From sequence record MZ574432.2: a stretch of 64,000 nucleotides of DNA. One strand, 5' to 3'. The notes below the pieces were generated by a model. It saw only the letters and a list, made by a program, of their open reading frames with translations. It did no database searches and was not told the origin of the DNA. Shown here in pieces: positions 2,284 to 4,286 of this stretch (position 1 is its first letter; each line of letters begins with the position of its first letter). The position numbers were made by a program, and so were the translations under genes.

Positions 2284-2862
2284 ATGAAACGAAGAACCAT
2301 CATCGCCGGCGCCGGTATCGCTCTGGGCATGGCCGTCGCCATGACCCTGGCGGGCTGCGACACGCCGCAGCAGAAGGCGATCAACGAGGCCAGCTACAAC
2401 GCCTCCCAGCGCGTGGCCTACGTGGCCAAGAACGCCCTGGACTTCGACAACTACAACAGGCGTCAGAAGCTGAGCGATAACCCGTCGACCATCATCTGGT
2501 GTACGGCGGTCTTCCCGCAGGCCGGCATGCCGCCGATCACCGTGCCGATCGTGGGCAAGCTGACCTCGGGCGGTAAGCGTCCGTTCAACACCGACATGGG
2601 TCCCGACGGCATGTACGGCTCGTCTGGCGCCTACCGCTACGGCTTCACGCCGGGCGGCAACATGGTCGAGTTCGACGGCATCCCGACCTTCTGCTCCAAC
2701 GAGCCGACGGTCTGGCAGCGCGAGAAGACCACCATCGTCGTCGAGACGGCCGCTGATCTGTCGGCCGCCACCAAGACGGCCCAGAGCCACGTGGCTGGCG
2801 GCCAAGGCGCGCGCGCCGACGCCATCCTGTCGGCCGCCGCGAAGGGGACCCCGAACCAATGA
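2284..2862 (+). CDS. Lipoprotein with twin-arginine-like signal
   Basis: MKRRTII N-region, hydrophobic core, lipobox LAGC. Confidence 0.75.
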   Translation: MKRRTIIAGAGIALGMAVAMTLAGCDTPQQKAINEASYNASQRVAYVAKNALDFDNYNRRQKLSDNPSTIIWCTAVFPQAGMPPITVPIVGKLTSGGKRPFNTDMGPDGMYGSSGAYRYGFTPGGNMVEFDGIPTFCSNEPTVWQREKTTIVVETAADLSAATKTAQSHVAGGQGARADAILSAAAKGTPNQ

Positions 2863-3254
2863 AGGTCATCGGCTCCATCTTCCTCGGTCTCATCGCCGTC
2901 GTCCTGGTCATCCTGACCGCCAACGCCCTGGGCTGGCTCGGCGCTGGTTCCAACGTCGTCTCGGCCGGCAACGTCAAGGCTCAATGGGCCGAGGCCTACA
3001 AGGCCCACGAGTCCCTGGGCTCGGCCGCCTTCTCGGTCTGCTCGGCGGAAAAAGCCCTGGCCAACGCCATCACCGACGGTGAACGCATCCAGCGCCAGAC
3101 CCAGCTTTCGGCCTACGAGCAGAACTACGCCCGCATCGCCGGCGAGTACAACGCCCAGATGGCCGACGGCTTCCGCGCCAAGTACGTCAAACCGGCGGAC
3201 CTGCCCGATCGGGCGCCGTCGCTGACCGAATCCAAGCTGGCCTGCGCCGGCTGA
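2859..3254 (+). CDS. Membrane-anchored or secreted protein, probable partner of the lipoprotein
   Basis: N-terminal TM helix; ATGA-coupled; followed by terminator. Confidence 0.7.
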   Translation: MKVIGSIFLGLIAVVLVILTANALGWLGAGSNVVSAGNVKAQWAEAYKAHESLGSAAFSVCSAEKALANAITDGERIQRQTQLSAYEQNYARIAGEYNAQMADGFRAKYVKPADLPDRAPSLTESKLACAG

Positions 3255-3260
3255 CATGAC

Positions 3261-3290
3261 AAAGGCCCGGAGGCATCCTCCGGGCCTTTT
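3261..3290. terminator. Bidirectional intrinsic terminator
   Basis: AAAGGCCCGGAG-gcatc-CTCCGGGCCTTTT between convergent units. Confidence 0.85.
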
Positions 3291-3342
3291 GCTTGATGTA
3301 TCATGCGTATTCGCCCGTTATGACTGATGTGTCAGTCAAGGG

Positions 3343-3421
3343 TGGCGGCCCCGGTGGGGATCGAACCCACGACCTCTGCTTTCGGAAAACAGCGCTCTTA
3401 ATTCCGCTGAGCTACGGGGCC
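3343..3421 (-). tRNA. tRNA-Arg (anticodon CCG)
   Basis: Cloverleaf: GGCCCCG/CGGGGCC acceptor, GCTC/GAGC D-stem, loop TTCCGAA, TTCGATC T-loop, encoded CCA. Confidence 0.93.
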
Positions 3422-3423
3422 AT

Positions 3424-3498
3424 TGGCATGCCCGGCCGGAATCAAACCGGCATCCGGCGCTTAGAAGGCGCTTGCTCTCTTCGTTGAGCTACGGGCAC
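3424..3498 (-). tRNA. tRNA-Arg (anticodon UCU), slightly non-canonical
   Basis: GTGCCCG/CGGGCAT acceptor, loop CTTCTAA, encoded CCA; A-C mismatch in anticodon stem, T-loop TTTGATT. Confidence 0.85.
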
Positions 3499-3515
3499 GC
3501 AGAAAGGTGGGGCGC

Positions 3516-3563
3516 TTAGCGCCGCCGCCTGATCGTCTTTCTGATGGTGCCCGAGAAGGTCAT
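3516..3563 (-). CDS. Arg-rich leader peptide MTFSGTIRKTIRRRR
   Basis: AGGAGAGG SD-like sequence, ATG..TAA; Arg codons AGA AGG CGG CGG CGC; stop 17 nt before tRNA-Arg(UCU). Confidence 0.65.
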   Translation of the reverse strand: MTFSGTIRKTIRRRR

Positions 3564-3569
3564 GATCCT

Positions 3570-3599
3570 CTCCTAACCTATCTCGTCGGCGCCGTCAAC
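3570..3599 (-). promoter_or_regulatory. Promoter for leader-tRNA unit
   Basis: TTGACG-N15-GTTAGGAG; 13-nt GTTGACGGCGCCG identical to the promoter at 15737. Confidence 0.55.
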
Positions 3600-3651
3600 A
3601 AATGCGCCATGACGTCTTGCGTGACACGAAGACTTGGGGCAGATTGCCGCC

Positions 3652-3978
3652 ATGACGATCCTCACCGAAGCTGAATTCCTGTCCGGCCACCTGCCTCCCG
3701 CCCCGGCGGTCGAGCGCGACTTGGCTGGCCTGATCAAGGTCCTGGCGCAGTCCCTCTATTACGAGGCTGACGATCCCGCCCCGAGCGAGGACTACTTCAA
3801 CTACCACGGCGGACGCGGCTATGATTCGCACCTGCGCAAGGACTACAAGGTCACCGTGAAGGGCAACATCCTGTCGACCGGCGCCAACAACGCCGACGAC
3901 TTCTACAACGTCAACTTCCTGGCGCCGGCGCTCTACGATCGCCTGGAGGCGTTCTTCGCTGGGAAGGCCGCACGATGA
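3652..3978 (+). CDS. Hypothetical protein (paralog of next gene)
   Basis: GC3-rich from ATG 3652; LYDRLEAFF motif. Confidence 0.7.
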   Translation: MTILTEAEFLSGHLPPAPAVERDLAGLIKVLAQSLYYEADDPAPSEDYFNYHGGRGYDSHLRKDYKVTVKGNILSTGANNADDFYNVNFLAPALYDRLEAFFAGKAAR

Positions 3979-4286
3979 GCCAGGACCGCGACTTCCAGGG
4001 TCTCGTCGACGTCCTCGAAAAGGCCATGGCGTCTGAGGACTACGGTGACTACAACCATCACATCGCGATCGGGCCGGAGGCCAGCTACGATGGCTGGAAG
4101 ATCACGGCTGGCTCGGGCAGCATGACCTATGACGCCCGTTTCAATCCCGAGGACCTCTATGACGGCCTGGAGGCGTTCTTCGACGCCCGTCTGAAGGCGC
4201 GCATCCATGCCCTGATGGACAAGATGGTCGAGCACGAGAAACGCTATATCGAGCACCTCTTCGGGCCGGACGGCGCGCTGAAATGA
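3975..4286 (+). CDS. Hypothetical protein (paralog of previous gene)
   Basis: ATGA-coupled; LYDGLEAFF motif. Confidence 0.7.
   Translation: MSQDRDFQGLVDVLEKAMASEDYGDYNHHIAIGPEASYDGWKITAGSGSMTYDARFNPEDLYDGLEAFFDARLKARIHALMDKMVEHEKRYIEHLFGPDGALK

Follow-up and report, generated by a model that had tools for sequence, protein, structure and literature searches.

A conserved 15-codon reading frame ahead of two tRNA-Arg genes of Caulobacter phage BL47 is a probable leader-peptide gene in a family of putative codon-sensing tRNA units

Caulobacter phage BL47 (Bertelyvirus, Dolichocephalovirinae) is a giant or ‘jumbo’ phage with a genome of 326.8 kilobases (kb; record MZ574432.2), of which a stretch of 64,000 nucleotides (nt), here called the window, is the starting point of this study (window position n corresponds to genome position 248000 + n). 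In this window, a 397-nt gap between the plus-strand genes gp416 and gp417 harbours a unit on the minus strand, for which the GenBank annotation lists two genes for arginine transfer RNAs (tRNAs), tRNA-Arg(UCU) and tRNA-Arg(CCG), and nothing else. Directly ahead of these genes lies a short open reading frame (ORF) of 15 codons plus TAA, encoding MTFSGTIRKTIRRRR (3516–3563, minus strand, from the ATG at 3563 to the TAA at 3516). Our comparison of sequences suggests that this ORF is probably the leader-peptide gene of a two-gene tRNA-Arg operon and the smallest member of a family of ribosome-read sensors that act in cis. The case for codon sensing is strong for the family and moderate for the Arg unit itself, to which it plausibly extends. 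A preliminary description of this DNA had already proposed such a codon-sensing leader; the idea gains from the conservation of the ORF and its codons, from sister units and from an attenuator at one of these (unit C), whereas a Shine–Dalgarno sequence, another of its elements, is probably a misreading, and a terminator at the hairpin is a weak candidate.

Results

Cognate codons in the Arg leader and their conservation

The leader contains five Arg codons, which are AGA (codon 8, 3542–3540) and a run of AGG, CGG, CGG and CGC (codons 12–15, 3530–3519), with the run also forming the 5′ arm of a hairpin. Arg codon usage in the plus-strand genes of the window is dominated by CGC (58.8%), with CGG (13.6%), AGG (6.0%) and AGA (3.1%) being much rarer. 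That the leader, by contrast, uses the AGR/CGG set served by the downstream tRNAs had been pointed out in the preliminary description, and both the codons and the usage figures agree with this. With AGG counted as cognate, i.e. allowing wobble reading by tRNA-Arg(UCU), 4/14 codons (AGA, AGG and twice CGG) are cognate to the two tRNAs, both of which are covered; this corresponds to P = 8e-5 against the codon usage of the phage and to P = 0.0085 against a base-composition null.

The Arg unit is carried by four Bertelyvirus sequence types only, namely BL47, the RB23/C1/C2/J4 type, CcrBL9 and CcrSC. A blastn search of phage genomes detected it in Bertelyvirus records only, and neither IMG/VR, which gave CcrBL9 and CcrSC only, nor a metagenome scan, which gave none, added further units of the Arg type. 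Start, frame, 15-codon length and stop are kept in all four types (with the leaders reading MTFSGTTRKTIRRRR in RB23, MTFTATIRTVSRRRR in CcrBL9 and MISTVTIRTVSRRRR in CcrSC), and the conservation of the leader ORF in related phages, which the preliminary description had named as a check, is thus found in 4/4 Bertelyvirus types.

Conservation is distributed very unevenly along the unit. Between BL47 and CcrBL9, 18/35 positions (51%) are identical from the −35 hexamer to the ATG, 22/33 in codons 1–11, 7/17 (41%) from the stop codon to the first tRNA and 149/156 in the two tRNAs. The sequence AGG-CGG-CGG-CGC-TAA-G is identical at 16/16 positions in all four phages, as against 11 substitutions in codons 2–11, and the CAGAA that includes the AGA codon (3540–3542) is also invariant in 4/4 phages. 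There are no insertions or deletions inside the ORF, but they do occur just outside of it.

The invariant Arg run (3519–3530) opens the hairpin GGCGC-UAA-GCGCC (3505–3530, minus strand), which holds the UAA stop codon in its loop, has a predicted energy of −16.5 kcal/mol in BL47 and RB23, and is followed by CCACCUUUCU. In CcrBL9 and CcrSC a hairpin of −14.4 kcal/mol is formed with a different pairing of the 3′ arm and in a different register. Since the 5′ arm has remained invariant while the 3′ arm has changed and re-paired, a second constraint seems to operate on the 5′ arm, and the alignment suggests codon identity as the obvious candidate.

In C1 and RB23, a change of an upstream TAG to TAC opens the leader frame towards its 5′ side, and the C1 record annotates a 45-residue ‘hypothetical protein’ here (gp395c, stretch L005, 1758–1895). 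Ending at the leader stop codon, this gene looks like an artefact of automatic gene calling.

Sister units of BL47

If short ORFs rich in cognate codons also stood ahead of related tRNA clusters, as the preliminary description had suggested looking for, the Arg leader would not be an isolated case. Sister leaders are present in BL47 itself: outside the window, three tRNA clusters are headed by a TTGACA-type promoter and a short ORF. Unit A comprises the tRNAs for Glu and Asp behind the leader MTFSIFLFRETGSPSRDTSAS. Unit B, with the leader MTRIHTTLTTAKPASTGALTLASWPASSKPLLRHSAVLA (annotated as the hypothetical protein gp151), consists of tRNAs for Pro, Thr, Lys, Leu (three genes), His, Ala, Ser (three genes) and Trp, and unit C, with the leader MSKSYRQFVRQIQFVRVNRAGRSRMDDGGTRV, of tRNAs for Tyr (called by ARAGORN at a relaxed threshold only), Val (two genes), Ile, Gln, Asn, Arg(ACG) and Phe. 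The Arg unit, with tRNA-Arg(UCU) and tRNA-Arg(CCG) behind MTFSGTIRKTIRRRR, is unit D in this series.

Across units A–D, every tRNA has at least one codon in the leader of its own cluster (24/24). In a table of leaders against clusters, the diagonal is highest for B, C and D, and the binomial P for amino-acid matching is 1e-7 for B, 7e-4 for C, 4e-3 for D and 0.75 for A. The stop codon is located in a hairpin loop in all four leader types, as judged by eye on folds and sequences. No family match was obtained for the sister peptides in Pfam or PHROGs.

The unit B leader matches its 12 tRNAs in 33/38 residues and 22/38 codons and covers all 12 of them. A B-type leader of Brevundimonas phage Kikimora differs in sequence and is the same in composition (T, S, A, L, K, H and P together make up 39/44 residues), and it is followed by a canonical terminator. 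The Trp codon and tRNA-Trp go together, i.e. both are absent in the Kikimora unit and both are present in BL47.

The unit C leader contains 15 consecutive cognate residues, YRQFVRQIQFVRVNR, drawn only from the seven amino acids of its cluster (Tyr, Val, Ile, Gln, Asn, Arg and Phe). It also occurs in CcrBL9, CcrSC, phiCbK, Rogue, BL10, Colossus, Brevundimonas phage Papperlapapp and one metagenomic viral contig. Synonymous swaps (TAT/TAC, CGC/CGT and TTT/TTC) occur among its cognate codons, which also stand in a different order from phage to phage although the set of amino acids stays the same; this argues for selection on decoding rather than on a function of the peptide. Downstream there is a terminator with an invariant GC hairpin and a U-tract, in which five pairs show compensatory changes; the GenBank records of phiCbK and Colossus have a terminator annotated at this position. 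An antiterminator segment inside of the ORF, CGG(G/A)CGGGCC, pairs with the 5′ arm of the terminator (72/72 cells), with two compensatory pairs tracking changes in both terminator arms. Segment 2 is CGGGCGGGCC, and the upstream 1:2 helix overlaps the cognate codons. As predicted from these pairings, unit C is a complete trp-type attenuator layout placed on a tRNA operon.

Unit A is more compact. Its leader (stretch L009, 31290–31355; homologues in L020, L021 and L023–L026) has exactly 21 codons in seven phages, its codon pairs CGA-GAG and CGA-GAT(-AC) are invariant in these seven, and its stop codon lies in a hairpin loop. The rare CGA ahead of each test codon may sensitize decoding. The first 12 nt of the unit A leader and of the Arg leader are identical.

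Not every tRNA gene of the group is preceded by such a leader. No leader ORF was seen by eye at cluster E of BL47 (transfer-messenger RNA (tmRNA), Met, Met, Cys) or at its lone tRNA-Gly gene, and in phiCbK, Rogue, BL10 and Colossus the gaps that precede the tRNA-Arg genes hold unannotated tRNA-like genes and no Arg leaders. As an observation in its own right, such unannotated tRNA-like genes in the gaps of phiCbK, Rogue and BL10 include two that relaxed ARAGORN calls tRNA-Arg in the phiCbK gap.

Promoter geometry and a probably leaderless transcript

The Arg unit has the −35 hexamer TTGACG (3593–3598, minus strand, read directly), which aligns with TTTACA in CcrBL9 and CcrSC, and, 17 nt after it, the predicted −10 hexamer TAGGAG (3570–3575, minus strand), which overlaps AGGAGAGG. 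The hexamers in the −10 position of the other three phages are TACGAG, TAGAGA and TAGGGA. The layout of −35, 17 nt, hexamer, 6 nt and ATG is the same in 4/4 phages, while the intervening bases differ. The preliminary description had read AGGAGAGG as a Shine–Dalgarno sequence. This reading has been rejected because of the overlap of AGGAGAGG with the predicted −10 hexamer and its lack of conservation, with TAGAGATCGAAT at the same positions in CcrBL9 and TAGGGATTGGAT in CcrSC.

An ATG located 6–7 nt after the −10 hexamer is found at unit D in four phages, at unit C in eight and at unit A in 5/7 phages, with a spacing of 9–11 nt in Colossus; no clear −35 was identified at unit A of CcrBL9. For unit C, the distance is 7 nt in the eight isolate genomes and 5–6 nt, behind a similar promoter, in the metagenomic contig. 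A loose pattern of promoter and ATG has 12 sites in six BL47 stretches (approx. 312 kb, both strands), three of which belong to tRNA leaders, and two of which coincide exactly with the annotated starts of gp233 and gp305. The start codon of the Arg leader would thus lie approximately at the predicted transcription start, i.e. its messenger RNA (mRNA) is probably leaderless, given the conserved geometry of −10 hexamer and ATG, the rarity of the pattern and the occurrence of leaderless mRNAs in Caulobacter, where 375 of them have been found to be translated about as efficiently as leadered ones (PMC4117421).

The annotated ATG of gp233 and gp305 (genome positions 163867 and 199825; stretch L011, 13867 and 49825) is located 7 nt after a −10 hexamer, and BL47 appears, from this spacing, to use leaderless mRNAs for some ordinary protein genes too.

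A similar promoter also occurs on the minus strand at approx. 43766–43660 of stretch L010, between gp211 and the nrdA gene gp212 on the opposite strand. Here, ATGACCTTGAAG... begins 8 nt after the hexamer in the −10 position, and this ORF has 13 codons (MTLKTQVLVSSRP) and contains a 9-base-pair (bp) hairpin. The unit may represent a small RNA or another leader.

Hairpin, tRNA genes and flanking elements of the Arg unit

Both tRNA genes are on the minus strand, have an encoded CCA end and are called by ARAGORN, with tRNA-Arg(UCU) at 3424–3498 (56.1 bits with the Rfam tRNA model, threshold 29) and tRNA-Arg(CCG), which follows after 2 nt, at 3343–3421 (60.1 bits, same threshold). The leader ORF begins 6 nt after the predicted −10 hexamer, 17 nt separate its stop codon from the first tRNA, and there is no room for a second promoter. 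In BL47, the hairpin ends 6 nt before the 5′ end of tRNA-Arg(UCU). With a permissive E-value, an Rfam search of positions 2800–4200 found nothing but the two tRNAs above the gathering threshold and, in particular, no T-box or other cis-regulatory family.

That the Arg hairpin would act as a conserved intrinsic terminator is not supported by the comparison, because the U-rich tail UUUCU (3501–3505, minus strand), a weak terminator tail at best, is present in BL47 and RB23 only, with ACCCCUC in CcrBL9 and CcrSC. A classical intrinsic terminator was also not called by a terminator scan of the Arg unit, and it is retained as a weak option for BL47 and RB23 only. The leader sequence CGGCGCU is complementary to AGCGCCG in tRNA-Arg(UCU), a match that may be trivial, since both sequences contain a self-complementary GCGC core. 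The pairing of the leader with the anticodon arm, to which the preliminary description had drawn attention on these grounds, has been set aside. A further candidate, an ‘anti-tRNA’ fold of the leader with the acceptor strand, is strong in BL47, was not reproduced in CcrBL9 and has not been adopted.

Upstream of the −35 hexamer, the block GTGTCACGCAAGACGTCATGG with its TCACG motif (3607–3627, minus strand) is identical at 17/21 positions in BL47 and CcrBL9. It is kept in CcrBL9 and CcrSC although the adjoining plus-strand gene has been replaced there by a non-homologous one. The TCACG...TTGACA arrangement recurs in BL47 at the tmRNA gene and at units A and B. The block could be bound by a regulator or act as an upstream element of the promoter, in either case in common with other stable-RNA promoters. 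At its other end, the tRNA unit is closed by the GC-rich hairpin AAAAGGCCCGGAGG-ATGC-CTCCGGGCCTTT (3261–3290), which also ends gp416 on the opposite strand and has 27–30/30 positions identical across the four phages.

All sequence features listed for the Arg unit in the preliminary description were recovered at their positions on the minus strand. Its remark that this is the only clear minus-strand unit of the window is roughly right, with 95 plus-strand as against 3 minus-strand ORFs having a coding-like GC profile.

Other RNA features of BL47 and its relatives

BL47 encodes a set of tRNA repair and maturation proteins, i.e. a 3′-phosphatase/5′-polynucleotide kinase (gp188c, stretch L010, 26679–27737), an RNA ligase (gp231, stretch L011, 12520–13683) and a CCA-adding enzyme (gp320, stretch L012, 6344–7537), which fits a phage that invests in working tRNA pools.

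A permuted two-piece tmRNA that is absent from the GenBank annotation is located at 805–1114 of stretch L013 (genome approx. 150004–150313; Rfam RF04321, 73.9 bits, threshold 47). It has a promoter of the TCACG...TTGACA type, and the cluster of tRNA-Met, Met and Cys follows.

Between tRNA clusters B and C, a gap of 1.4 kb without annotation contains a GOLLD-like large RNA (stretch L009, 35631–36048, genome approx. 85631–86048, minus strand), with a match to Rfam RF02032 of 104 bits and E = 4e-27, which is below the gathering score of 150.

The first gene of cluster C is an unannotated class-II tRNA-Tyr(GTA)-like gene (stretch L009, 40037–40126), which was called by ARAGORN at the relaxed threshold only and matches tRNA-Sec in Rfam with 29.6 bits. 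The gene is also found in CcrBL9 (stretch L014), in Papperlapapp (stretch L022) and, by eye only, in stretch L033. According to the phiCbK genome paper, no phage of the group has a tRNA-Tyr.

Discussion

An important question is whether the Arg unit really shares the mode of action suggested by its larger sisters. We place it in the same family because of its promoter type, its predicted leaderless geometry, its first codons, which it shares with unit A, its cognate codons and the position of its stop codon in a hairpin loop. Within the family it is of the compact type, like unit A, because its first tRNA follows 17 nt after the stop codon and neither a conserved U-tract nor an alternative pairing was found.

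Several observations weigh against a codon-sensing leader in the Arg unit. No U-tract is conserved among the four phages, with the terminator scan being negative, and no conserved alternative (antiterminator) pairing was found in the 65-nt leader, so that the unit is without two defining parts of a classical attenuator. A scan with the E. coli consensus called no promoter at the unit, and the TAGGAG hexamer is without the consensus final T. Changes in codons 2–11 affect all three codon positions and thus leave no protein-coding signature there. With only about two and a half independent lineages carrying the unit, it is not improbable that a 15-codon ORF stays open by chance, and one of the three frames of a GGC repeat, such as the (GGC)n hairpin arm, reads as Arg codons. 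The kinetics are also awkward, as a ribosome stalling at AGA (codon 8) would leave the hairpin free, which is the opposite of a stall at AGG or CGG. Finally, the Glu and Asp codons of unit A are not enriched (2/20, P = 0.75).

Some of these points are what would be expected if the region were simply an untranslated 5′ leader of the tRNA precursor, in which a promoter-proximal hairpin is conserved for stability, for processing by ribonuclease P (RNase P) or RNase E, or for pausing, and in which the Arg codons are a by-product of (GGC)n. The hairpin is indeed kept in both lineages via re-pairing and ends 6–7 nt before the RNase P site, the substitutions in codons 2–11 have no third-position bias, no Shine–Dalgarno sequence is conserved, and the GGC repeat would account for the Arg run. 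Pure structure, however, should allow both arms to vary, whereas the 5′ arm is invariant at 16/16 positions as against 7/17 for the 3′ side. Nor would it explain why the distance from the −10 hexamer to the ATG is constant at 6 nt, why insertions and deletions spare the ORF and occur just outside of it, or why AGA and AGG are conserved although they are located outside the core stem, and RNA structure cannot account for codon matching in three sister units. We therefore regard an untranslated leader as unlikely, though as an alternative to be taken seriously. Alternatively, the ORF could be translated and serve as a general coupling device only, opening a pause hairpin or protecting the transcript, such that tRNA synthesis is tied to ribosome availability and the Arg codons are non-specific. 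The stop codon in the hairpin loop of all four leader types, similar to what is generally known of the trpL pause hairpin, the missing enrichment in unit A and the consideration that, if coupling is tight, the hairpin would be covered by whichever ribosome is translating would all be consistent with this. Such a device would, however, have no use for Arg codons that are the rare ones read by just these two tRNAs rather than the usual CGC of the phage, for B and C leaders that cover every tRNA of their own cluster, or for the 1:2 / 2:3 / 3:4 layout of unit C, which puts cognate codons where stalling selects the antiterminator, and we consider it rather improbable.

Two further readings focus on the RNA fold and on the peptide, respectively. 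Codons 4–6 of the Arg leader (CGGGCAC) are complementary to GUGCCCG, the 5′ acceptor strand of tRNA-Arg(UCU), and this pairing might trap the precursor in a fold other than that of a tRNA as long as no ribosome covers the leader. In BL47 this helix has 7 Watson–Crick bp, leader plus tRNA start reach −32.6 kcal/mol (z = −3.98), the helix replaces the cloverleaf in the minimum-energy fold of the complete precursor, and a similar leader/acceptor helix with one covarying pair is seen in the unit A alignment. In CcrBL9 and CcrSC, however, there is a mismatch at the central base, z reaches only −1.35, and two normal cloverleaves are obtained when the precursor is folded as a whole; moreover, the minimum-energy structure predicted for the unit A leader of Kikimora does not include the helix, no matching complement is seen by inspection in the Bajun leader, and folding of truncated RNA artificially favours such pairings. 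A folding switch of this kind therefore appears very improbable to us. Even less credence can be given to a small basic peptide acting in trans, e.g. by binding RNA. Its C-terminal RRRR and its length are conserved, and the leader peptide peTrpL reportedly has a role in trans, but the 11 N-terminal residues show little conservation even when CcrBL9 is compared with CcrSC, the sister peptides match no Pfam or PHROGs family, and it is the nucleotide sequence that is conserved, the Arg run being free of synonymous changes.

How could a codon-sensing Arg leader work? Host RNA polymerase would start at or next to the AUG from a sigma-70-like promoter, and 70S ribosomes would translate the leaderless RNA. 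The time a ribosome dwells on AGA, AGG and CGG would depend on the pools of charged tRNA-Arg(UCU) and tRNA-Arg(CCG), i.e. those of the host plus those of the phage. As long as a ribosome is held on the Arg run, the hairpin would be kept open; once the ribosome has finished and gone, the hairpin could form. It might then limit tRNA output by one of two candidate routes: UUUCU could cause pausing or weak termination in BL47 and RB23, or processing of the 5′ end 6–7 nt downstream could be impeded. Either route would result in negative feedback, in which slow decoding of its own codons leads to more tRNA-Arg. For the Arg unit, we infer the sensing step by analogy to the sister units. In more general terms, we hold it to be somewhat likelier true than false that Dolichocephalovirinae of Caulobacter and Brevundimonas use leader peptides (leaderless in 3/4 unit types) to poll each downstream tRNA, with slow decoding of any polled codon raising transcription or maturation of the whole cluster.

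Leader-peptide attenuation is textbook knowledge for amino-acid biosynthesis, and tRNA genes are usually seen as being controlled at their promoters by growth rate or the stringent response. Like trpL, hisL, leuL, pheL and thrL, the phage units feature a short leader ORF between promoter and regulated genes, an over-representation of cognate codons and a stop codon in a hairpin loop, with unit C also having the full 1:2 / 2:3 / 3:4 layout and a U-tract terminator. In contrast to these systems, they would regulate tRNAs rather than biosynthetic enzymes, so that the sensed molecule is the product itself, and the Arg unit differs further by its probably leaderless mRNA and by having neither a conserved U-tract nor an identified antiterminator. 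That one leader samples several amino acids is also seen in ilvGMEDA (Leu, Val and Ile codons) and in the thr leader (Thr and Ile), but the sister leaders sample 7–8 amino acids and all of 8–12 tRNA species including individual isoacceptors, whereas the Arg unit samples two isoacceptors of a single amino acid. In pheM-pheST, cognate-codon attenuation also acts on a component of the translation machinery, i.e. phenylalanyl-tRNA synthetase; this target is a protein, whereas the phage leaders would act on the very tRNAs by which they are decoded, so that the feedback loop would be direct. T-box riboswitches likewise respond to the state of a specific tRNA, but they bind uncharged tRNA directly and without translation, and the Arg unit has no T-box match in Rfam. 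A ribosome that closely follows the polymerase and blocks terminator formation is also the principle of pyrBI, which senses uridine triphosphate (UTP) via polymerase pausing and not codons. The bar minigenes of phage lambda are very short phage ORFs that affect tRNA pools as well; however, they comprise 2–3 codons and deplete tRNA by peptidyl-tRNA drop-off, whereas the Arg leader has 15 codons and is in cis to the tRNA genes. To our knowledge, leader-peptide attenuation has not been reported for tRNA genes. We found no prior description of it in full-text searches of a literature collection that leaves out most subscription journals, or in the phiCbK genome paper. What would be novel, then, is the target, i.e. 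the tRNAs that decode the leader, and the polling of up to 12 tRNA species by a single peptide.

If this is correct, tRNA genes would be subject to feedback regulation by their own decoding activity, with the Arg unit representing a minimal version for two isoacceptors. Such a circuit would sense decoding capacity directly and adjust the supply of the sensed tRNAs isoacceptor by isoacceptor, and it could serve as a compact natural sensor of individual tRNA pools for synthetic biology. Small ‘hypothetical proteins’ beside phage tRNA arrays, e.g. gp151 of BL47, would then probably be regulatory leaders and not proteins. For the phages themselves, it would provide a testable answer to the questions of why large phages carry sets of tRNA genes and how these are dosed: a phage would top up those tRNAs that its host does not have, that are lost at shut-off or that are cleaved as a defence, and would thus have a built-in response to host tRNA depletion or to defence by anticodon nucleases.

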